A stretch of DNA of 59,692 bases, from contig FLMG01001109.1 of NCBI GenBank assembly GCA_900088475.1, positions 1 to 59,692 on the forward strand, given 5' to 3'. Numbering within the stretch: position 1 is the stretch's first letter; the number at the start of each line of letters is the position of its first letter. Shown in pieces: positions 1 to 28,381 of the stretch. The notes under the pieces were generated by a model that saw only the letters and a program-made list of their open reading frames with translations, had not been told where the DNA came from and did no database searches. Source of the stretch: Hyphochytrium catenoides. Its lineage: Eukaryota; Protista; Hyphochytriomycota. A program made the translations under genes and the position numbers.

Positions 1-402
1 AGTTGATGAGAAAAAGGTTGTCTCTTGGCTTTGATGTCTGTCTCTCTGGAAGCACGAAACGAACCGTCACGCGGGTCAGGAAATCTATCCATTTCCATGT
101 CTGAAGTATATGAAACTAACGCCTTTGACATAGCTTCTATAAGCGAGTAGTTGAATCTTTGCACCTCGAATGTTTCTTAGGATGGGTTCTGACCAAAGAG
201 CGGGACAAGCCAAAGATTTGGGCACCCAAATGGGTAGCTTTGCGGTACTATCCGGATGACCCTAATGGAAGCAAATATAGGGACAGCTACGTGCACAGCT
301 TTTGGCAGAGAACCCATGGGTACCCGAGGTTGCACTTCTGGATAAGTAGGAAATTGATGATGCGAACCCTCCACTCTTCGCTCTCTCCTCTCTCCTCTTT
401 TC

Positions 403-455
<53 letters not shown>

Positions 456-1015
456 ACACAGACTCTCTCTCTCACACTGTCTCTCTCTCTCTCTCGCTTC
501 ATGTCCTGCTCTCTCAAGCATCTTCCCTCTCCTTTCCTTCTTCCTCTTTCTCTTTGAACTGTGCATCTTCACAGTTGTGCTGTTTCTCTCGTCTGTCAGT
601 GCTCAGTTTCTTGCATAACACACGCCGGCCCCGCCGCATAGTGAAGTTCGGTGCCCATGCTATTCGCATGCAGCAGAGATCAGCGCAGAGGTCTGCCGCA
701 TCAAACCTGAGGAAAGGAGAGCTGGAAGCAAAGGGAGAGACCTCCCAGATAGAGAACGAGGAACTAGAGACTGCGGGAAGGAAGAGCCAAGAGCGGATAG
801 AGGAACAGAAAGAGACTAAAAGAACGAGACAGAAGGGCAAAGAGGTAGACGACAGGGTAGAGCAAAAGAGCAGCCCCGAGCGCAGAGACGGCGACCACTT
901 CAGCGGAAGCAAGAGAACACTTGCGTTTGCTATCTCACCAACCACCGGAGCCTACCGCGACCATCATCCAGTCCTTTCAGCCATCCAAGGGCAGTGAACG
1001 CCTCACGTTAGAAGG

Positions 1016-4000
1016 ATGGTGGAAGCAGAGAACAGAACCTCTTCGATTGGAGGTAGGTGGACCATATGAAGGCTTTACACTCCTTTTACTGGCATGACAG
1101 GGTCTGACAGTGTGTGTATAGACTTAAGGGACCGCCTACGCTTGGAGCTGAGCTCGGACGGCATCAGAGAGCTGGCTGGCCATCTAAGACAAGTAAGGAA
1201 CCACTTGCTGCCTTCTTTATCTCCTCCTTTCCTTCTTTCAGTCATGGCACTTGTCTCTGGTGCTCTCTCTGACTCTTCTCTCCCTTGGATTAGCAAGGGA
1301 GTCTTCTAATCTCTAAGACCATTATCATTGCTTGGGATCGCCGTAATGGCTATGTCCTCCTCTTCCGAGGTGCTCTACTTCCTATCGTTGCCTTAACCTG
1401 GGGCCACAAGCCTAATAATCTGGAGCACAGTCCTCTCCCTCCTTTCCTCTCCACAAAAGCGTCGCCCCGTCCACCCATCCACTTCTATCTTGGCGGAAGT
1501 CAACGCTTGTACTTCATGTTCTCGCGCCTTGTTGGCGCTCTATGGCTCTATTACTCCTTTATGGCTCTATTGACTGTCAGTGGCTCACACAGTTCTAAAT
1601 GCACCTTTAGAATGTCGACATACGCAACCGTCGGAAGCGAATGTGGCGATATCGCCTTTGCTTTAGAACTGATGAAGCGGTAGACTGGCTGGTGGGCAAT
1701 GAATTTGCAACTTCTGAGGCTGAGGCGCTGGGACTGCTGGAGCTGATGATCATACATAAGATTATAAACTGTGTCAGAGGCGCGAACAGTAAGCCAGATG
1801 TCTTCAACATGCCTCTCTTCTCTTCTCCTTTATGTGGCCTCACAAACTCTATTCCCATTGTACCATATCTTCCCGCAAAATGCCTCTGCCTGCCTCTGGC
1901 GTCGCTGGGCCCTTGTGTTGAGAGCTTGCTTTCTTTGTTCAGTGTGCCTAACTCCATATCATCAAAGGCCTCAGGGTGACTCCTTTTGCCTCTTCCTTTC
2001 GATCGTCTCTCTTTGCAGTATGTGTAGGCCTTTGTAATGCTGCTGCAATTCCAATGTTCCCCACCTGATGACTCTCTCTTTTCGTTTATCCCGCTGTCCT
2101 TATGGCATTGACTCAACTTCTGCTATAGCAAAAGAGCCTTGTATCCTAGCCCTTCACACTTCTCAATTTTTCATTTGCCTCTGCATTCACATACCTGATA
2201 CGCTTGCTCTGGTTATCTCCACAAATTTTGAAGAGGGGACTCTGGACTACTCTGAAGATTGTTTATGCCGCTTCGTTCAAGAGGAGAAAGAAGAGAGAGA
2301 ATCCGATGACAGAGAATCAGTTTATGTCTCTCGTCGGTCGAGTGTTCTTTCCTCTGAAATTGGTAAGGCATCCATCCTCCCTCTATTCTCTTCCACTAGT
2401 CAGTTCCGAGCCTCTTGCTTGCTCTGAACGTCCACCCGGACCTCTTCTTGCATGTCAATGTCTTCCTTCCCAGTACCATCGCGTAATGGCACCCCGCGGT
2501 CTCGGAAGTCTTTCACTAGATAGACAATCCAAAGCCTTTTCTGTCAATCGTTCTTCCTATTCCATATCTTCTTCTTTCTTCATGGGCTTCCTCTCTGTCT
2601 AAGCTTTTCCTCTCACCCTCATCACTTCCCTGAAGGTGAGCACTATGAAGATGCGATAGGTCTTTTGGATAGTGATCTAAAGACTGATAGCGATACCACT
2701 GCCAGTCAAGGAGAAGAAGAGAATGGCCCTTGTTGGGTCTCGGTCTTACGTACGACTTTGAAACACTTTCGCTTGCTGGCTTTGTTGGTTCTTGCAGATC
2801 AATCGTGGTTTCGGACTGGTCTGATGCTCGGTTATACTCTTCTGGCGCTGTCACTGCCAAGAAAACTATTTGATTATTTTATTCTGGCAGTTATTGATGC
2901 TGATCCTCTTCCGCACGGCGGAAAGACTGAAGACGAGGCATTTGTGCGGGTCTTCTTCTGTCTGGGCGATGAGAAACAACTGGTATGGGAAGAAGTGCTA
3001 AAAGTGTTACCATTCGGTGGCCCTCGAGCAGCGCTGTTGAAACGCAATCCTTTCAAGTTGATGATTCTACTGTCCTTCCCTTCCGTCTTGCTTGCCTGTT
3101 TTCCAGGTGGCGATGCAAACTTTGCCTCGGCGTCTATCTTTGGTTTTGTCCTCATACTCTAAACAGCCATTTCTTGAACTTCCAGATAGGACAAAGCTCT
3201 CCCTCGACATCTCATTCCCCTCGGTGGTACGCTGAGATCGGAGAGTTTTGGGGCCTGGCTCTTGAGCAAGAGGACAAGGCCGCAATCATGCTGCAAGTTT
3301 ATGTTGGACAGGAGCTGATGTAGGGCCCTATTTCCTGTCGCTTCCTCCATACATTAGCTCTGGTGTTACCTTCCTGGGCCCTTCTGTTCTGCTTACCAAT
3401 CGTTGCTGCTTGCTTGCCTTCATGACTCTCCATGCATACACGGCTGTCGTCTTGACTCATCTGCCATTTCCCCTTTGCCCAGTGGTGAGGCTAAGTTGCC
3501 CTTGGTCGGTACAGCGGAAAATATCTGCCACATTCCGCTGCAATTGCGGGACAAGAAAAAGAAGGTAAACCTTATTACTTTCAACCGCTATTTCACCCTA
3601 CGGAGGATTCACCCTACGGAGGACCGACTGCCTTATCAGTGTGCTGCTCAATCACTACTTCAGTTCTGGGTATCTGTGTCCTCTTTGAGCCCGCCATGAA
3701 GATGCTGTCTTTCTCCTGCTCATACAGTGAGGCGGCTTTACAACTCCTTCTCCTCTGACTCTTACTCCGCATCCGTTAGGCTACCATCCAAGCTGCTCCT
3801 TACATCAACGTGGCTGTGAATAAAGGGCCCAGAAGTCTGTCTGAGCATGAACGAAGAGAGGTAAGAAAGAAATGTGATACATGGGAGAAAATCTAAAGAT
3901 CTCGGAGGGTAGAAGTGAAGGGATGTAATTTGCCGATAAAGATACAAGGCATATTTATTCAAAGAGGAGAGCCACGAAGAGCCACATGGTATATCTGCTG

Positions 4001-7000
4001 CCCGTCGGCTGAGGACATTGTTTCACGATCGATTCTCTGCTTTTAGCTTTTTGGGGTATCTACCGATAGATATCTATCTTTCTCTGCTGTATCCCTGCTG
4101 CACCAGATAAGTAGTTTTACCAACCAGGTAAGAGCTTGTCTCTTCTGCTCAGATATGTGCAGACCCTATCAAGCTCGTATAGATGAAATTGTTGCCGGCT
4201 CTGCTGTCCATAGTGGCAGACGATCTCACAGCCTTCCATCTTGGGTCAAGGATTCGCCAGACTCTGTTCAATGCCAATGCCAACACATACATCTCATGAT
4301 AACCCTTTCAATCGCTTCTTCCTATGTTTTGGTGCCTATTCTGCCAGAGTCCATTCATTAATGGGCATCTCCTGCCATGCGTCGTCTCTCTTTTTATATA
4401 CAGCACTCCACGAAAGATCGCGTATATCCCTACAGCATGATCATTCAGGCGATTGCAGAGGGAGAAGAGATCTACCGCAATATAACTCAGGCTAGGAAAA
4501 GGCAAGAAAATTTACATAATAAAAACGTGCCTCTTACGCCGGAGGAGCCAGGAGAAGATGATGAGGACGAGGAGGAAGTCGGTGGGAAGAAGGAAGACAT
4601 TGCCAACCTGCTCTGGTTTCTGTTCGCCAAGTGTGGGGAGAAGAGAGCACTCTTTACTAACGGGTCCATCCAGATCGAGGTAGATTCGTACACAACTCTG
4701 TGTTGCAGTTTGCCCTGGTCCTCGTACTTAAAGTTTTAGCGCACTGGAGTTCGCCCGGCACTCCTCTCTGCTTCATTCTCCACTTCAGTCCCCTCATGAC
4801 GGACGAGATCAAGTCATGGGAGTGCTTCTTCCTTGATGGTCATCCGTGCTTTATGCACTGTGCTCCCCTAATGCCTTAACCCTAACAGTTCTGGAACCAG
4901 TCATGGACTGGAGAGGAACTCCCCCGACTGACTTAACCCTCACATCCTGCATGTTGCCACATATCCATAGGATCCCGGATACCAGCTATTTTCCTTCTTG
5001 TCCAGATTCGGTTATTTGCGCGCGTTTTCTAACTCACAGGTCGGGGCCTTCTGAGAATAATTTGAGCTGTGATCAGCTCCCTGAACATTCTTTGTGTTCC
5101 TGCCGCCACTTCTCTATGGTTGCGCCGTAGAAGGAAGCTCCTAGAGAATATAGCTCGAGAACTTTTGACTCCTCTCACCTGCTGAAGTATATCCGCTTGA
5201 GGCAGCAGCTGGGCAAATATAATCGTATGTTTGTTGCCCGGATCTTCATATAGAGGGGCCGTCTTCGTTCTTTGGTGTCCATCTCAGCCCAATACTCTGT
5301 TGTGGCGCTCGTCGACATCCTTTCTCTCTCCTTCTATGAGCCTATATCCTCGGGATCTACCTTCCTCATGGTCTTTGTCTTTCTCTCTCTGTCTTTCTCT
5401 AATTCGCTCTGTAGTCTGATTGACTTACTCAGCTAGTCTACTCATTGCTTCTCTGAAGTCCCGGAGCAGGAGATCAAGTTTAGCACTGCAGAGGGCGAAT
5501 CTCAGGGCTACTTCCAGGTAAGCAATGATAAAAAGCAGCTCAGCCAACGGCAGACTACTTCTTTCTCTCCTCATTCTCTCTCTCTCTCTTTCTTATCTCT
5601 CTCTCTCTCTCCCTTATCTTTCGCCGTTCCGTCCTCATTCTTGCCTGTTTTTAGCTTCTTTCAGGGTCGTTTTTCGTCTCTCCTCCACCCCGCTGCCTAT
5701 CCTTTGTCTACACTTGCTTCCCTAGCCATTAACGTTGCCTCCTATCGCTTATGTCCTCACAACGTAATCCCATAGGTTGGGATAGACCTCGGCCCCAAAG
5801 AACTCCGGACAGGGGCGATTAGCCTGTTCTGCAACAAAGCGGTACGTATATCGCCCGGATGTGAAATTGCACTAACTGCCTAGCTCTGAGATTTCCTTAT
5901 GATAGCTCTCAAAGACTCTGCTTTCTCTGGCTTGTCTAGTTAGGTTGAGCTTAGATAACTTCGACCCTCCTCCACTCATACGCTTTTGCTGTCCATACCG
6001 TGGTCAAGCTGACTTCCACTTCTCTGTAGCTCTTCTGTATCCCTTCCTCATCACCTTCCTTGCTCCTGCTCTCCTTCTCTACTCCTACAGCACGTTATCG
6101 TGGGAAAAATTCCGCCAAAAGTGCCGGGACGGGACTTTCTCTTTCTAAAGCCGGAGCTCTGGGGAACAAAGCACCGGAAAGACCAGTTTAGGCATAGTAT
6201 TGAGTTTCTCAGAACTCGCCGAGTCAATGTTAGGGGAAACAATGTGAAAGAAAACGGTATTCTAGCTCTCTGGAACTGCTTCTCGTCTCCCATGGCTTGT
6301 AGAGGATGTTTCTGTTAACTCTTATCTCTCTTCCTATGTCTTACCCCAGTTGAGTCTTCCTCTCCAGTCTTATTGCTGCTTTGGCTGGTCTGGAACATCG
6401 TAGCTCGAATATGTTTGTGCACCTCAGTCCCCCGCCTGCCTTACGTCTTCGTTTGCTTCTCAGTCCCTGGACTGCTTGTTCTCAGTTAGTTCCGTGCTGT
6501 ACCTCCGCTATCACAGCACGATTGTATCTCTCGGTCTTCCTCTCCTCTCTCAAATAAGCTTATTGTTTTCAAGCATCTGGTGCTTGATCGCTCTTCCCCT
6601 AACGTTCCTTCCATTTCTCTTTCTTATCTCGGGATCGGTGTCCTTTCCTGCCACCATGGCCTCTGGCTTCACAGAGGGGACCGAAGAAGCCTTTGAAGTG
6701 GCAGAAGGTATGCGGCGATACTGCTACTACTCTTTTACTGTTGACTTCCACAAGAGGTTACCGCTCCTCTGCCCTCGAAAGGCACACCAAGTCCCGAAAA
6801 TGTCTCCTTCCTTGACGCTAACCTTTGCTTACTATGGGTGACTTCACTGTCTGACTGCACCAGCGGGAAGAAAGCATCTGAGGAAGGAACATCCGGATCC
6901 AAGATTTCTTCTTCAGTTCTCCTCCCTCTTGGATCAAGTCATGGAGATCCCTTTCGGATCCGTCATTGAGCCGCCCATGACTAAGGTAAGAACACGTCTT

Positions 7001-8428
7001 CAAGAAAGTAAAGTACACTTTCTGCCTTTCGTTGGGATGAGGAGATGAAGGGAAAGTGAAAGACGCAGCTGCACGTGGCTGAGGAAGGAGCTTTCTAACG
7101 CCGATGATTGCTATCTCCGTCTGGTCGACCTACCTCATAGGAGGAAATGACCTATCGAGCATCCATTTGCGGTCTTTCCTACATTTTCAGGACAACTGAG
7201 GAGGTAAGATAACTCGGCCTGAGGCTCTGACAATTGGTAACGAGGACCACCTCATCGACGAGCGCTTGCGCACTCTGTCGCCATTGTGTGGTCTTCTAAC
7301 TCGGCAGGATTGTTGTTGCATTATAGTCCCTAGTCCCTGTTCATACGTCTACTTGCTGCCTGGTAGACGTCCTCGATCTATATGACACTCTCTGCCTGCG
7401 GCCACGTTGTTAGCTCCTCTAACTCTGTCTGTCCTCTTCATGACCATCCCAAGGTGCTTAAGCAGAGTAAGCTGTTATTGGAGCGTCACACAGGGGAAAA
7501 TGGAGTTGAGCTTGGAGCTCTTCAGAGCTCCTATCATCTGGCTAATGAGATCCTAGCCAAAAGTGAGTCAAGGAGAAAGTTGCTATCTACCCCGTGAGTT
7601 AAGGCACCGAAAAGACAGTTAGAAACAGACATGGAGTGAGTTCGACAGCTAAGTGACGTGGCAAGATGACCGTAGTGAGGGGTAACCGGGCTATGGAGGA
7701 TGCCGAGTCGATCATCTGCATGTCTCCGCATAGTGCGTGTAGCGCAACTTACACATTTGTCTTCTGCTCTCTCTATCTTCTCTTCGCGTCGGGATTACCT
7801 CGCTATGCTTCACTTCACGTCGCCCTTCTCTTTCTCCCTCTCTTTCCTTATCTCTCTGTTCCAACCTTCTGCCTTTCTTCACTTTCCCGTGGTCTGTTAT
7901 GTGCCAGTTAAGACAAACTCGTGGCTCGATCATCTGGAGTTCAGATTTGGAAATGAGGTCATCTTGGATCAGGGAGAGCTCGAGACACCTCTTGGCGTTC
8001 GCTACGCGAGAAGGAAGACCCAAGAAGGACGGGAACCGGTTGATAAAGTGACAGAAAACGACCGAGCACCGTTTCTCTTGCCTGCTTTACGCAGAGGTTT
8101 GCAAGAGATCCAAGCTAGCTCGCAGTCTCTCCTGTCTACACCTCCTTGCGGCTATCCATCCCCAGTTAGCCCATCTCCCTCACCTGTTAGCAAAAGGGAG
8201 GTGAATAAGGGAGAGGACGATAGAGACTCTCTTTTATACCAAGACGCTCTTGGAGAGGAGTTGAAGAGGGCACCGCCGCCTGTTATCGCTCTAAAGGAGA
8301 AGCGAGAGGACATTCCAAGGAAACAGGGTGATAGTCTTGAGGAATTGCCCACAGAAGCTGTTCAACCAGCGCTAGAAGAGGAGCGTGATTTAACTGAAGA
8401 AGCCGACTTCCAAGACTGCCAACAATAA
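1016..8428 (+). CDS. Multi-exon (~20 exons, ~890 aa) protein: DEP domain, hydrophobic/TM segment, C2-like domain, unassigned conserved enzyme-like domain, low-complexity tail
   Basis: GT-AG exons that join in frame without stops: 1016-1052, 1101-1192, 1611-1788, 2234-2362, 2636-2982, 3186-3319, 3483-3564, 3780-3860, (4107-4127), 4404-4679, 4971-5039, 5131-5224, 5459-5517, 5776-5841, 6091-6256, 6675-6707, 6864-6985, 7454-7562, 7676-7732, 7908-8428. DEP signature: VDIRNRRKRMWRYRLCFRTDEAVDWLVGNEFATSEAEALGLLELMIIHKIINCV...DCLCRF. C2-like: AFVRVFF...IGQS...SPRWY...IMLQVY...LIGEAKLPL. Start codon and minor exons uncertain. Confidence 0.75.
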
Positions 8429-9037: not shown

Positions 9038-12000
9038 TTACGATTTGAGCTTGTGCCCTTTGCCGTGGTGTGGAGGAGGAGGCACAACTCCCGCAGATCC
9101 TGTCGATGCACCTCCTGCTCCCCCGCCTGCTGCAGCACCATCCTGCTGTTGATGGGCGTAGTGCTGGGTAACAGCGTGCCGTCTCCTATCTTCCATGGCT
9201 GCTTGCTGCCTTGCCAGGCGGCGGAGGTGCTCCTTCAGGTCTCTACAGCGAGGGACTGGACAATTCTCTGCCCGGCACTGGCGGGCGTGGATCTGTAGCA
9301 ATGCCCAGATCCGCCGACATACGTGACATCCCCCAGCTGCTCGGACTGTACAAGTTGCGCCGTGTCGAAGCAATTGCTGCAGATTGCAGTTGCGTCAGAG
9401 ATAGCAGATAGAGAGGTATGAAGCGAGAGGCTGCAATTAGGGAAAGTCTTCAAGTACAGAACAAACCCACAAGAAAATAGCAAGAAGAGCTCTTGACGAC
9501 TAGGGCGGGTTAAGTTGCGTCAGAGAAGACTCCGAAGAGTAAGGAGGGCCACACACCTTCATCTTAGTACAGTTTGCCGAAGGGCAGGAAGTGCCTGAGC
9601 ACGCTGAGGCGTGGGAGAGCAGCTGCATATGCAACTGGATAGACCGAGCACGCTCCCTTCGAGCCTTGTCAGCCTTCGCACTGTCATCCTTACCGGTGCC
9701 TGTAAAAAGGGAGCGTGTGTAAGGACAAATGGCTGGCGTTTTACATATAAAAAGGGTGAAAAGGCAGCTGCAATGGCTGAGAATGGCAGATATAGCAGGC
9801 AGGCCAAGAGAAGAAAGACAAGATGAAGCAAAAAAGAATCCATAATATCAACAAGCGGCTCCGTGGCAGAGAAACTATATTCCATTCTCTATCTTTTCCA
9901 TATACCTGTGACTGGGAAGGCTTTGAGCTCATGCTGATGCTTCACTTTCTGTTGACAATCGTCACAGAGATCAAAGTCCGCGCATACATCACAGTGGTGC
10001 CTATTCCCTGTGAGAATATCCTTCTTGCAGTTGTCACAGGTGTGTATGTACGCTGGGGCTGTGGGGTTGTGAAGGTGATAGAGAACCATGATGGAGCTAT
10101 GCTTAGCGCGCCGAAGTTGGTCGAACTGGTAGTGATTGCCCTGTGTAAGCAAATGAAAGCATTGGCCAAAAGAGCAATTGACATCAGTAGGGACTCCATA
10201 GGGGAAGAAAAGCAGCACTTCTTATCCAGCCAGTATCATCAAAGAGATCATCTGAAGAAGAGCAACCATATGTACAAATGGATGTCCAAGATGCGCACAC
10301 AGTAACGGACTGAAGAAGCTTGCTGAGGGTAATACCTGACACAAGCTTAGGAAAGCTTGTCTTGTGTCAAAGAACTCGCACTCCACCATTTCGTCCTCCT
10401 CCACCACCTCTTTGGGTACATTCACTGGCTCGGGAATGAGGGCATGCACCTCATCCTTTCCTTTCGGATGCTGCTCCTTGCTTGGGAGAGAAAGAGAAGC
10501 CTCGTAGCACGTATCGCATAGATTATACTCTACGGTGGCGGGGTTGAGGGCGTGTTCCGTCGCGGGACACGTAGTACATTTCCACCTATTTCCTTTGATG
10601 ATAGGTTTTAGACAGGCCTGGCAGTCAGGGTAGAGCTTACAAACAAGGAAGTCGTCCTTCATCGGCTCAATGACGGTGCCTAACTTGACCATGAGCGGAT
10701 CCTTGTTCTTGTCGTCCTCCGATTCTATTGTCCCTGTGCTCCTGGTTCCTTTCTTATTGCCCTTCTTTTTGCTCGCCTTCTTGTTTCCTCTCTTCTTTCC
10801 CTTCTCTGCTTCTTCTTTCTCTTCATCTTCTAAGCTCTTGATGAACTCCTCTGCAACTCCGGTCCAATAGTCTCCTTCGAAGTACGGGAGCGCCGTAACG
10901 CCCTTGGCCTCGTTAAAGAACTCCTTATATAGGTTCGAAATCTCTACCACGATCCCTTCTTTCTGGCTCTTTAGGAGAAGCGTGACATACCACTGCCGCA
11001 GCCTCTCACTCTTCGGAGTCTTCTGTTCTTCTGGGTGGCAATAAAGAATATAGTCATCGCCCTTAAGAGGAGGGCAGGCCCAAATGTGCGCCGTATGATA
11101 GCCACGTCTCTTGACATACTCCAAATATGCCACAAGTAACTCTTGGTATACCAGCGTTCGCACATGTCGAGGACGGAAGTACTGGACAGAATCCAAGTAG
11201 CTGATATAAACACGGCGTTTGTTTGGTTCCGGTGCCTGGTGGTCGAACTCGTGGACATACATTCCAAAGAGAAGCACATCTACGCCATCTATCTGCTGGA
11301 AGAGCACGATGCACTTGCTCTTATAATGGAACTCCGCTGGATATTTGTGGCTTTCCTTATACCTTTCGTACATCTTCTCTCTCACCACGAGGGGTTTCTC
11401 CACGAAGGAAACCTGTCGGATGACGAGGTTATCTGCTGTTTCTATGTCAGCCACCGGTCTACCTGTCCTTGCCGCCTCATCTTTTCTCTCTCTATCCAGC
11501 ATCTGGCGTATCTTGACTTCTAGATAGTCACTAAGCCGAGTCCGCTGCAGTTCTTTGGCACCCAGCGGCCGAGGCTGGATTGCATATTTGGCGGGTTCTG
11601 CCTTTCTTTTGTCCTTGAGGCAGATTGGACAGTAATATTGTGTATTGTTGTCACTTTCCATGTTGCGACCGTTGAAGAGGGCGCAGATCTGGTGCATCCA
11701 GCGGTTGCAGCCGTCGCATCCTACCCATGGCTCCTCATGCACCTCGTCATTCTTCTTCTTTACTAGTTCACTTCTCTTCACCACTGAGCCGTCGGAAACT
11801 GTGATGCTCTCCTCTTTCAACTCCTGATAGCAGGTCTGGCACCAATGGTACTTGTTCTCACTGTTCGTATAGTAGTAAGAGTTGCGTCGAATTCTGCCTG
11901 CACAGGTGCCGTTGCAGAAGAACACAATGGGTTCAAAGGTAAAGCGCTCTCCGCCGCAGAGGCGGCAAGCATTCGCTCCTTCCCTTCTCTTCTTCTCTTC

Positions 12001-24420: not shown

Positions 24421-27400
24421 TCACTCAAAATCCGTCACTGCTGAGGGACGGAAAGAAGAGGAAGACCCGAACTGCTTCTCCAAAGAGCTAACCAGCAGGT
24501 TCTGCTCCTCTAAAGCCACCTTCTGCTTCTCCAGCTCTCTCTTTTCTCTCTCCTTCGCTCTCATGGCCTCCTTCATCTGTTCTTGCAGCGCAGCATTCTC
24601 CTTCTCCCTCTGCCTGGCTTGCTCAAGCTCAGCTTCTCTCTGCTCTTTCTCTCTTCGCAGCTCTTCTAGCTTCTCTTCCTCTCTTCGCCGAAGCTCTTCC
24701 CTCATCGCCTTCTCCTATGAAGGAGAAACAAAGAATGAAGGAAGAAGCATGGACTGTTAGATAACAGAAAAGGCAGCATCCTATGGCAGGTACACTTCTT
24801 ACCTTGTTTGCCACTTCCAGCTCCCTCTGCACTTTCAGATGTTCTTCTGTCCGTACAGAGGTCCAGAGAGAAGAAGAGGTGGGGAGAGGCGCTGTTGGAT
24901 TCGAAGTGGAGGAAGAGAGAGTGTCTCCCTTTGTGGTCGAGGAAGAGGCGAGAGAAGACCACGCTTGGACATTCTTGAGCTCCAGCTGTTGAGGCTTGTC
25001 TTTGTCTTCAGACGCGACAGTAGCAGCAGCAGCAGCAGCTACCGCCGTTGCTTCCACTGTCTTAGGAGCTTCGGGAGTTCTCTCCGATGTCTAATGAACG
25101 AGCAAAATAGAGACAAAAGACAGAGAGAGAACAGAGTAAGAAACAGGAAGGCTTATGGTTAGCAATCAGCTAACAGCTGCTCTTGGAAAAGAACTCAAAA
25201 GACCAGTCCCGGCCAAGGGTCAACGATCCCTACGCCCCCTTTCCTTCTTCCCTCCCTCTACATCTTTGGAGAGAGAGAAGAGCGAGGAAGTAAGAACCCA
25301 CCCAAAGAACACCAGCCCGTCAAAACCCCATTGGCACCTTGTCGTCATCTGAGGCGCTGCCGCTATCTTCATCATCACTCTCAGAACCTAAGAGCAGGGA
25401 GGCGGCGTCAGACAGGAGCTGATGAGCAGAATCCACTAAGATACTTACCGCTAGACGACGAGGAATCGCTCCCACTGCTTGAGCTATCTGACGAGCTCTC
25501 CCCCAACGTTGGAAAAGGCTCAATCTTCGCTCTCTTAGCCTGCTGGCCGTTGAAGTCGGGCACCTGGGCACCCTCAAGTGCACTCAACTGTGCCTGAACT
25601 TCAGCGATCTGCGCCTGATGCGCTTCAGCCACTCGTTGAGCGAGTTGCAGCTGAGACCGGCCAGCAGGTTTTGCAACAGAAGGGCGAGGACGCTTCTTCT
25701 TGGCGGTGAGGCAGCCCTATTTAGCAGGAGTCGTGAGCCTCTGATCAGTTCAAATAGGTAAGAGAAAGGCTAGCGATAAGCAGCACCGCAAGAACAAGAA
25801 ATTTCGCTTTGTACGTCGTTTAAAGTCTTTAAGCGTCGGCCCAAAAGGTCAGTTCTCCATAAAAAGCGAAAAGACTGACAGAGCGTCACGACAGTGCTGA
25901 TTGGTACCTTGACGTAGTTCTGCAGATGTCTCAGAGTCTGAGTATCAAGCGAGCCGATGTCAATCTCTATCTCTTGGTCTGTGTCCTGCTTGCTGATGGG
26001 CATCCGCTCGCTGATGATCTGCAGAACGCGGGTCAACTTGTCCGCTGACAGCTTGTTGATGTCCAAGCTAAGTCTTCTCTTCTCTTCGAAGGTCAAAGGA
26101 CGATTCTCGTCAAAGTCGTAGCTCATCCGAGAGCCGTTGGACGGCGCTGGTGATGACACTCTGCCGGAGGTAAAAAGGAGCCGCAAATTAGTGAGATAGG
26201 AAACAGAACAGCTGATGTCTAGGAGGCTAAGCACAACGAAGATGGCAGAAGTAAGCCATGAGAACCTCCTATTCCTAGTGAACTGTACGAACTGAGATAT
26301 GTGGTTCTCTCTTCTCACCTTTTCTGTCCGAAAGGAGACAGAAGAGAAGGCGCCAGACTGCCCATTGCGTGCATCTCGTCAAGCTGCTTTTTCATCATCG
26401 CAATCTGTTGCTTCATCCTCTCAATCTCATCCGCTGCCTCCGAGGACACAGGCGGTGTAGGGATAGGGGGAGGAGAGGTTTTCCCCTTAGCTGAAGAGAA
26501 TGACGATGACCGAGGAAGAGAGTCTCTCTTCCTGTGAGAGCTTACGCCTCTGCCTCCCTTTACACGAGGTGTCTTCGCGCTATAAGGTTTATCGTCCGGA
26601 TCGTAGGGCAACTTGGGCTTCTTTGTTCTTGGAGTCTTCGTAAGTGAAGCGGGAAGAGGACCCATCTTGGCCATCAGCTCTCCATACTTATAATCCCAGA
26701 TTTCCTCGAGCATCTTCGCCCACTCGTGTACGAGGTGCTTTGGTCTATTGTATGTCTTAGCATTGCGGAAGGTGAGCCTCACATGCTCTGCCACCTCTTC
26801 AGGAGATGTATAGAAGCCGTCCTCAAGCCTCTCTCTAACAGTTCCTAAGTCCATCGGCTCTGTTATGATATCCAAATAATCTGGGATGTTCAGCGCGACA
26901 GGATCCACCGGCTGGAGGAAAGGATGTGCATACTGGTGCTTCATAATCTGAGAAAGGATCTGTCCTACTTTCTTCATATATTCCGGCACCTTAGCAGGCT
27001 GTGGTGCCTCTTCTTCCTCCTCCCAGGCGTCTCGAAGATGAGAGGGGATTACCCTCTTTCTCTCCGATCGAACCCTTGGTGATGATAAGTCTTGAAGCGG
27101 AGTTGCCGCCGCTGTAGGCGTAGGCTGCGAAAGCTTTCCCAACGCACTCCTCTTCGCGCCTTGCTTAGGTGAGGCGCGAGGGGTTGCCTCTTTTGCTGCT
27201 GGCTTTTCTGCAACAGCTTCAACAGTCGGCGCTGTTGTCCCCGCTCTTGCCGTATCTACTGTGGCTGTGATGGGCTTTGCCTTAACAGTCCTTTTGCCTA
27301 CTGAGGCCCTTCCTTTGGCAACCGGAGGTTTCTTTGCTGGCTTGGGCGCTATAGGGCGATAGGTTTTGGTCACTTCTAGACTATTCTTGCTAAGATTGAG

Positions 27401-28381
27401 ATGTCCATCGAGGTCAAACGATCCAAACTTGTTGGCCCCGTGTCCTCCAACTTTATAGCGCCCGCTGATCGCTGGATCCTTCACAAAGATCAATGTAAGA
27501 TTACTCTCATTGATCTTTTGTGGATTCCCAGGCGTGATCTGGATGAAGAAGTGTCCATCATAGAGACCCGAATAGGGAAACTGTTCCTCATCATCAGGGT
27601 TGATGGGCTTCTTGGATTTATATTGAAAGCGACTCGTTTGGCCACCAGGTAAGAACGCCGCTTCGGACATGCCCCAGTCCCCTTCCCACACAGCCAATCC
27701 GCCCTGGACAGAGTATGATCCCCGCAGGACTGGGACAGGAACAGGAACAGCAGGCGCTGGGGGAACAGGAGCGGCTTCCTTGACAGGAGTAGTCTCCGCC
27801 ATTGGCTCCTAACAATGAAACGAAGAACGAGGAGAAGACAGAGAAAGATGCCGGAGCGCAAGAAAAGACAAGGGATAATGTCAGCTCCTCTTTCTAGTGC
27901 GCTGTCATAAGACTAGGCCATGAAAATAGAGGAGCTATTATTGAGACAGGAAAATTAGGGGGAGTCCATCCCGGACCTTGTCGTTGACGTGCTCTGCAGG
28001 ATTATCGTGGTCAATTCCCTCTTTCTGCATTTGACTTATCTCACTACAGATAGAGATAGATGACGTTAGCTCTAACATGCCCGCTCTATCAATGGAGCCA
28101 CTCTGAGAAGTAAGACAGGCCCGGATGCCCCAACAAGCTTATCGGTAAGGTCTATTACACCCTCTCCAACTATAATGAGGACAACGAAGAGATACGACGG
28201 CCCCTGTCCCCAAAGGGTGACAGCAATTCAAAAGCGGGACATGGGGGGAGGGAAGGAAGACGGCGACAAGAATGAAGCACGGTTCATCGTACCTATTATC
28301 CTTGGTAATCCAATTGTCCACGTATTGTCTATTCTCAGTGCTAAGATGACCGTCATCGACCCTTGTAGGTGGGTTTAACAT
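24421..28381 (-). CDS. BET/GTE-like chromatin reader: uncharacterised N-terminal domain, single bromodomain, ET (NET) domain, C-terminal coiled coil
   Basis: Bromodomain YAHPFLQPVDPVALNIPDYLDIITEPMDLGTV...VRLTFRNAKTYN; ET domain RPLTFEEKRRLSLDINKLSADKLTRVLQII...EIEIDIGSLDTQTLRHLQNYV; LKNVQAWSSLA motif and E/R-rich tail. Two small upstream exons splice in frame, so the start is 28381, 28030 or 27802. Confidence 0.92.

Follow-up and report, generated by a model that had tools for sequence, protein, structure and literature searches.

The stretch of 59,692 nucleotides (nt) at positions 1 to 59,692 of contig FLMG01001109.1 in the Hyphochytrium catenoides genome assembly (GCA_900088475.1), referred to below as the window, raises the question of what protein is specified by a series of short exons at its left end, and whether the domain that they encode is peculiar to the protist or is shared with bacteria that live inside microbial eukaryotes. 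The original prediction, made from the letters of the sequence, described an enzyme-like domain belonging to no named family, spread over 11 exons and fused to a DEP domain, a transmembrane segment and a C2 module, and it viewed the whole as an old effector domesticated by the protist. The analysis reported here makes it on balance probable that positions 4404-8428 of the + strand encode the C-terminal part of a protist protein, and that this part carries a domain of an unnamed family that is also found in a few closely related Chlamydiia.

The window is intron-rich eukaryotic DNA with a guanine plus cytosine (GC) content of ~50% and pyrimidine-rich introns. From 4404 to 8428, 11 predicted + strand exons splice into an open frame of 525 codons, which ends with a TAA stop codon at 8426-8428, and all of the peptide strings quoted in the original prediction are present in the spliced translation. 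The introns of the domain chain, 91-418 nt in length, all begin with GT and end with AG (10 of 10). When each exon is scored in three frames by codon-usage log-odds, with four long open reading frames (ORFs) elsewhere in the window as training set, the frame of the chain scores best in 11 of 11 exons, an outcome with a chance probability of ~(1/3)^11. The purine fraction is also higher in the exons, at 0.36-0.73, than in the introns, for nine out of ten of which it is 0.28-0.43, and a crude chain finder that combines GT and AG sites, the codon score and the pyrimidine tract recovers eight of the domain exons exactly, as well as both acceptors of two others.

The only relatives of the domain that could be detected are bacterial. 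Exon 6 (6091-6255) was compared with 185,579 genomes of bacteria and archaea through six exact 8-residue seeds, a procedure that sees close seed matches only, and 245 stretches matched; among these candidates one relative locus (L001) was found, with a tblastn E-value of 1e-8, on contig CAWDOQ010000023.1 of a Chlamydiia metagenome-assembled genome (MAG). The ORF at 2052-3140 of this locus encodes a 362-residue protein (P0003) with an exact copy of the exon 6 octapeptide KPELWGTK. Comparison of the L001 protein with 5.8 billion proteins added two further relatives (P0001 and P0002), one 97% and the other 70% identical to it; the two come from Logan assemblies and fall in clusters without names. 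The detectable members besides the protist copy are these three proteins of 358-362 residues, and their sources are closely related Chlamydiia. The original prediction had placed relatives in intracellular bacteria of microbial eukaryotes, which holds for Chlamydiia, obligate intracellular bacteria of a type that infects such hosts; in the Dependentiae (Babelota), the group that it had named, none was seen in a scan limited to close seed matches.

Protist and bacterial proteins have in common, and in the same order, the motifs FxxGxIxxED, SSH, LRT, KPELWGTK...FxH[AS]I...TR, HxR[RK]E and DHL[DE][LF]RxGxEV..QxE.E. The spaced polar residues that first drew attention to the domain (SSH, G-I-D, KPE, H, RKE and RxGxEV) are kept in order in the relatives, with G-M-D and RRE as the bacterial versions of two of them. 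Identity overall is ~25-26% with many gaps, and the conserved positions are mainly His, Asp, Glu, Arg, Lys and Ser. Such a low identity, just ~26% over a gapped alignment, together with a collection that yields ~245 chance seed matches, so that the octapeptide by itself has no significance, is what would be expected if the bacterial match were a coincidence seeded by one 8-mer, and the "domain" a lineage-specific sequence without relatives. That explanation is very improbable in light of the profile comparisons. A profile built from the three bacterial sequences scores 34.5 bits against the spliced model in three collinear domains, of which the one with KPELWGTK and the ensuing FxH[AS]I...TR, in exon 6, contributes 21.3 bits. 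With the eight seed residues masked the score is still 12.9 bits, above all of 5000 shuffles (maximum 7.1), for an extrapolated p of ~2.6e-6, or ~6e-4 when multiplied by the 245 candidates. The C-terminal block DHL[DE][LF]RxGxEV..QxE.E, 100 residues downstream and in the right order, is a separate, collinear profile domain (10.5 bits, independent E-value 1.1e-5). With exon 6 removed altogether, 13.7 bits remain for the downstream part, where the best of 1000 shuffles reaches 8.2, and the upstream blocks, also collinear, give a weak score that is reached by 16 of 1000 shuffles. A reciprocal tblastn search of the whole window with the bacterial protein matched exon 6 alone (E-value 1.2e-5). On this sequence evidence as a whole, homology of the protist domain with the Chlamydiia proteins is regarded as established.

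Collinearity of the spliced product with a contiguous bacterial protein also provides comparative support that the predicted exons form one product. The block FxxGxIxxED, for example, spans the junction 4679|4971 uninterrupted in the alignment, and in profile scoring the match to this block is lost when the alternative exon 2 proposed by the chain finder is used instead. The domain exons are as follows.

4404..4679, + strand: domain exon 1; a helical and acidic lead-in, then the domain start IANLLWFLF...FTNGSIQIE; its final 25 residues are matched by bacterial residues 135-159.
4971..5039, + strand: domain exon 2 (DPGYQLFSFL...); carries on the block FxxGxIxxED...FF across the junction.
5131..5224, + strand: domain exon 3; SSH at 5170-5178; SSH, K and R align with bacterial S180-S181-H182, K184 and R187.
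5459..5517, + strand: domain exon 4; a segment inserted with respect to the bacterial protein, required for frame, with the best codon frame.
5776..5841, + strand: domain exon 5 (VGIDLGPKELRTG...); LRT aligned with bacterial L204-R205-T206, and GID resembling bacterial GMD by eye.
6091..6256, + strand: domain exon 6; the invariant KPELWGTK loop at 6148-6171, and 40% identity to the L001 protein.
6675..6707, + strand: exon 7, doubtful; 33 nt encoding EGTEEAFEVAE, frame-neutral, with a high codon score.
6864..6985, + strand: domain exon 8 (GRKHLRKEHPDP...); H-x-R-[RK]-E aligned with bacterial H262-R263-R264-E265.
7141..7203, + strand: domain exon 9; placed by frame and codon score, with a weak alignment that includes G-x-S.
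7454..7562, + strand: domain exon 10; placed by frame and codon score, with a weak alignment that includes LQ-SY.
7908..8428, + strand: domain exon 11; DHLEFRFGNEV, the conserved block at the domain's end, at 7928-7960, and after it ~135 residues of acidic and proline-rich tail up to the stop codon.

Two of the exons are less secure. Exon 7 is doubtful because it is frame-neutral, lies within a segment that the bacterial protein lacks, and lowers the profile score, which rises from 34.5 to 37.7 bits when the 33-nt exon 6675-6707 is omitted; the true number of domain exons may be 10 rather than 11. Exon 4 (5459-5517) would be placed by frame and codon score only, in a region for which the bacterial protein offers no homologous match. 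Nothing bearing on splicing was found in three small sequencing runs with the same species label.

As the original prediction had held, the ~320-residue domain (roughly 4600-8020) is assigned to a family that has no name in Pfam, NCBIfam or the PDB. Exons taken singly match nothing in Pfam, PDB or the ESM Atlas, and the tail of exon 11 has no Pfam match. When the full-length bacterial protein was used as proxy, the best Pfam match was PAS_10 with an E-value of 0.035, which is below the cut-off, and NCBIfam returned no match. Neither the bacterial profile (at E-values up to 10) nor bacterial residues 285-330 matched any PDB sequence. Single exons found no relative, eukaryotic ones included, in length-restricted word-index protein searches; metagenome contigs from JGI contained no family member, and neither a profile nor a degenerate form of the KPELWGTK motif matched any viral contig. 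A literature search found neither the KPELWGTK motif nor a paper combining DEP, C2 and oomycete. The apparent absence of relatives from eukaryotes carries no weight with regard to the range of the family there. The novelty lies in the domain: in searches that are limited in their reach for distant relatives, it has neither a name nor a structure, and a catalytic signature could not be recognised in it.

What, then, precedes the domain in the protist? A DEP domain (PF00610) lies 2.6 kb upstream on the same strand, where exon 1611-1787 matches profile positions 2-57 of 72 with 36.5 bits (cut-off 32.7; E-value 4.7e-9), and its predicted presence is confirmed at a score above the Pfam gathering threshold. 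Strong GT-AG sites link this exon to 8428 in frame and without a stop, in a chain of 18 exons and 795 codons, the upstream part of which reads as follows.

1611..1788, + strand: first DEP exon, matching Pfam PF00610, with GT-AG flanks.
2234..2362, + strand: probable second DEP exon and acidic linker; joins 1788 in frame to give ...CVRGANKGTLDYSEDCLCRFV..., as judged by eye.
2636..2749, + strand: acidic linker exon ending in the first C2-like strand; frame-consistent GT-AG sites, and the chain finder also ends an exon here.
2750..2890, + strand: probable intron, the supposed transmembrane segment; gtacga...ctggcag, 141 nt, a multiple of 3 without a stop, 38% T.
2891..2982, + strand: C2-like exon 1, frame-consistent, assigned by eye.
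3186..3319, + strand: C2-like exon 2, frame-consistent, assigned by eye.
3483..3564, + strand: C2-like exon 3, frame-consistent, assigned by eye, and in agreement with the chain finder.
3780..3860, + strand: linker exon, phase 0 in and out, with a strong donor GTAAGA at 3861.
3861..4403, + strand: proposed intron between the DEP/C2 part and the domain, 543 nt, with donor GTAAGA and a strong polypyrimidine acceptor before 4404.

The transmembrane segment that had been placed between DEP and C2 is not supported by this analysis, as the stretch at 2750-2890 is most likely a T-rich intron that happens to read through in frame. This interpretation is preferred because the stretch has intron-type ends and is rich in T, is skipped by the chain finder, has too low a hydropathy and carries an indel in a second haplotype, and because a C2-like strand is rebuilt when it is taken out. 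In the read-through translation, the best 19-residue hydropathy window reaches 1.56 and is located outside 2750-2890, a stretch that contains D and R; removal of 2750-2890 joins ...CWVSVL|LIDADPLP, the kind of strand with which C2 domains typically begin. The second haplotype, from DNA run X1, differs within 2750-2890 by 12 substitutions and by a +1 insertion at 2878, and there is a further single-base deletion in the intron following 2891..2982. Between 2789 and 3975, where model exons account for 31% of the length, the listed differences lie mostly outside those exons (six of six indels, 33 of 39 substitutions), and the linker exon 3780..3860 shows three conservative amino-acid changes.

The same DNA run contains two haplotype-like contig sets, at depths of ~210 and 240, which differ by 5-10% in introns and by small indels (2600-4360, 5148-5343 and 6324-6715). 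These sets, present at roughly equal depth, mean that the organism or culture either has high heterozygosity or combines two strains. The region 5623-6465, exon 6 included, is represented by a single contig in this run.

That the exons following the putative intron encode a C2 module (PF00168) of ~105 residues when spliced is plausible from a resemblance seen by eye. Singly, the three C2-like exons (30, 39 and 27 residues) gave no Pfam match even at E-values up to 10, each being too short to score, and exon 2234..2362 alone likewise had no Pfam match. An unrestricted HMMER search with 2638-2982 returned 0 matches with a query of which ~40% is probably intron read-through. Still further upstream, 181-349 and 607-1060 on the + strand are additional in-frame exon candidates (WVLTKERDKPKIWAPKWVALRYY... 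and ...LTLEGWWKQRTEPLRLE) with strands that look like those of pleckstrin-homology domains by eye; they had no Pfam match. The start of the gene probably lies before the window.

If the domain is shared with bacteria, its surroundings in their genomes may indicate what it does. In all three contigs with readable flanks (the MAG contig and two Logan contigs carrying P0001), the domain gene stands head to head with a gene for a 480-residue PI3/PI4-kinase-like protein (PI3_PI4_kinase, E-value 4.4e-12). Downstream of the domain gene there is a gene for a protein of 653-669 residues with several hydrophobic stretches and no family, then an ATPase_2 gene, and, further along the locus in the MAG, a Fic gene. 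The MAG contig is accepted as truly bacterial because a KDO-transferase-type gene and a leucyl-tRNA synthetase gene lie on it within a few kilobases. The neighbouring genes in the L001/L003 locus, at 393-1835 (- strand), 3217-5226 (+ strand) and 7324-7761 (+ strand), resemble a small island of host-interaction genes. In a language-model comparison the nearest neighbours of the bacterial protein were type III effectors, with scores of 0.63-0.73, which is a lead only. The bacterial proteins are candidate host-directed effectors, with secretion predicted from context.

These observations can be assembled into a proposal for the role of the domain. In the protist it would form a single polypeptide with DEP and a C2-like module and would act on the signalling of phosphoinositides or small GTPases at the surface of a membrane; such a role is suggested because of the company of DEP, and probably C2, in the protist and of the PI3/PI4-kinase-like neighbour in the bacterium. 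The KPELWGTK loop and the conserved His, Asp, Glu and Arg would form a catalytic or substrate-binding site, and the bacterial copies would be secreted, host-directed proteins that exert this activity within a protist host; presumably the gene passed between the lineages by horizontal transfer. A more ambitious version, which we consider quite unlikely, has the KPELWGTK domain as a new catalytic fold or enzyme class that works on phosphoinositides or small GTPases at membranes, is controlled by DEP and C2 in the protist, and has been copied by chlamydiae as a host-manipulating effector working with the PI3/PI4-kinase-like neighbour.

A number of points weigh against this proposal, or against parts of it, beginning with the activity. 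The junctions of the domain chain are predictions from DNA sequence, the putative catalysis is read from conserved polar residues, and the putative link to phosphoinositides or GTPases is drawn from gene neighbourhood and domain company. Two AlphaFold runs on the bacterial proxy, the first with the full protein and three sequences and the second with the domain only and two exon rows added, gave a mean predicted local distance difference test score of 49.9 and predicted template modelling (TM) scores of 0.32-0.37, and a Foldseek search of the model against the PDB returned no match. The models suggest a mostly helical fold with one hairpin before the KPELWGTK loop, and are too poor for use. 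Against clusters of the AlphaFold database (AFDB), Foldseek found a single high-probability entry, A0A814UVB2, an unnamed protein whose 374 residues come near the length of the bacterial protein, with a probability of 0.99, an E-value of 3.6e-3 and 16% identity over 312 columns. Its TM score is just 0.22 because the query model is poor; this protein may be a further member of the family, and is an unconfirmed lead.

The low-confidence models, mostly helical with their one hairpin, would fit a domain that is not an enzyme at all, and that serves instead for binding or regulation, its partner being, for example, a lipid head group, a small GTPase or a kinase, with the conserved loop as interface. 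DEP proteins are commonly regulators rather than enzymes, and neither a known catalytic signature nor a match to an enzyme family was recognised, which also speaks for a module of this type. Retention of His, Asp, Glu, Arg, Lys and Ser at ~25% identity is, however, more typical of an active site, and an invariant eight-residue loop in this setting points to a putative active or tight binding site. As this evidence is indecisive, a non-enzymatic role must be counted as a real possibility, if the lesser one. Several further resemblances, namely to CRAL-TRIO/Sec14 (FLFLKPEL), RapGAP (GNEV), Fic, IPK, the kinase catalytic loop (LKPE), the R-S-E motif of mono-ADP-ribosyltransferases and the BARA domain of Beclin/UVRAG, found no support in searches and were dropped.

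The second group of adverse points concerns how the domain connects to the DEP/C2 part. The putative junction 3860|4404 is phase-compatible and has good sites, but it could be a gene boundary, in which case the domain would be without a DEP/C2 fusion: without use of the donor at 3861 the frame runs into a stop at 3894, there is an ATG in frame at 4377, and 3861-3960 is purine-rich (0.67), unlike other introns. The domain would then be a separate gene starting at or near the ATG at 4377, downstream of a gene that ends at the stop at 3894, and would stand alone as its bacterial homologues do. Set against this arrangement are the donor at 3861, which is the consensus GTAAGA, and an acceptor at 4403 preceded by the strongest polypyrimidine tract of the region, in compatible phases; moreover, an intergenic gap of less than 500 nt would have to be supposed, and the residues read from 4377 to 4403 are merely a translation of the pyrimidine tract. 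Two separate genes are accordingly judged unlikely, and a single polypeptide with DEP, a C2-like module and the domain is the preferred architecture.

Finally, a tree of four sequences cannot give the direction of transfer. The proposal that the domain is a bacterial effector enzyme, chlamydial or similar, which moved to the protist in the distant past and there acquired introns and a fusion with DEP and C2, is the one that the original prediction put forward as an old domesticated effector. Bacterial relatives do exist and keep the motifs, no eukaryotic relative was found in length-restricted searches of single exons, and the ten introns and host-like GC content (0.496 vs 0.503 for the window) imply that any such transfer is not recent. 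Yet the bacterial range is very narrow, with three near-identical or 70%-identical proteins among 5.8 billion, one species among 185,579 genomes and no metagenome contigs, and the adjoining PI3/PI4-kinase-like gene is itself of eukaryote-like type. A narrow range is usual when an intracellular bacterium acquires a host gene. Because of this range and the eukaryote-like neighbour, capture from host to bacterium is at least as likely as passage from bacterium to eukaryote; descent from a bacterial effector is doubtful, and a weak lean is towards transfer from a eukaryote to a chlamydia.

Other features of the window bear on its general character. A p300/CBP-type histone acetyltransferase gene occupies 10222-16998 on the - strand, with bromodomain, CBP/p300 RING, PHD and HAT_KAT11 in one 658-residue exon and a TAZ zinc finger further upstream on that strand. 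A 495-residue single-exon bromodomain protein (PF00439, E-value 6e-21) is encoded at 26315-27802, also on the - strand. Microsatellites of the (CT)n/(GA)n type are common, as are N runs that represent assembly gaps (360-520, 5560-5625, 7696-7891, 23200 and 36100); 7696-7891, in the last intron of the domain chain, shows a depth spike of ~2500 and corresponds to a repeated CT-rich element.

A domain common only to protists and the bacteria living inside them marks the molecular interface between the two, and an unnamed, sharply conserved domain is a defined target in the search for new membrane-signalling activity. The bacterial homologue also offers a rare comparative check on a gene model, and the architecture could be corrected, with the supposed membrane span probably an intron. 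Should the domain turn out to be widespread in eukaryotes, a chlamydia would simply have borrowed a gene from its host, which is nothing out of the ordinary.

How does the protein compare with known systems? DEP domains occur in signalling proteins such as RGS7-type proteins, Epac, P-Rex and DEPDC1/5, and architectures in which DEP is combined with an effector module are common. The likely logic here would be similar, by analogy, with DEP preceding an effector module whose target is G-protein or membrane signalling; the modules of those proteins (RGS, CDC25-GEF, DH-PH, RhoGAP and others) were not detected here with Pfam, and membership in their families is not claimed. A parallel of another kind is LepB of Legionella, which has phosphoinositide kinase activity and is a GTPase-activating protein for Rab. 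Like the bacterial gene pair described above, LepB would pair a phosphoinositide kinase-type activity with a second, host-directed activity, but the two share no detectable sequence similarity in a PDB profile search at E-values up to 10, and the comparison is an analogy only.

The Chlamydiia proteins P0003, P0001 and P0002 are the closest counterparts, with an exact KPELWGTK loop and collinear blocks. They differ in being stand-alone and intron-less, with an N-terminal part of their own (~120 residues) and no DEP or C2, whereas the protist copy has insertions (exons 4 and 7, parts of 2/3, 8 and 10) and a long acidic tail. Passages of two reports (PMC4209131, PMC11323580) already describe domain sharing between protists and environmental chlamydiae. 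The eukaryote-like proteins of amoeba-associated Chlamydiae and Legionella that figure in those passages have named domains (ubiquitin-related, ankyrin, F-box and others), in contrast to the unnamed domain considered here, for which export is a prediction only. With that class the present case nevertheless shares, as far as those passages describe it, both a domain common to an intracellular bacterium and a microbial eukaryote and an adjoining gene of eukaryote type, in this instance a PI3/PI4-kinase-like gene.

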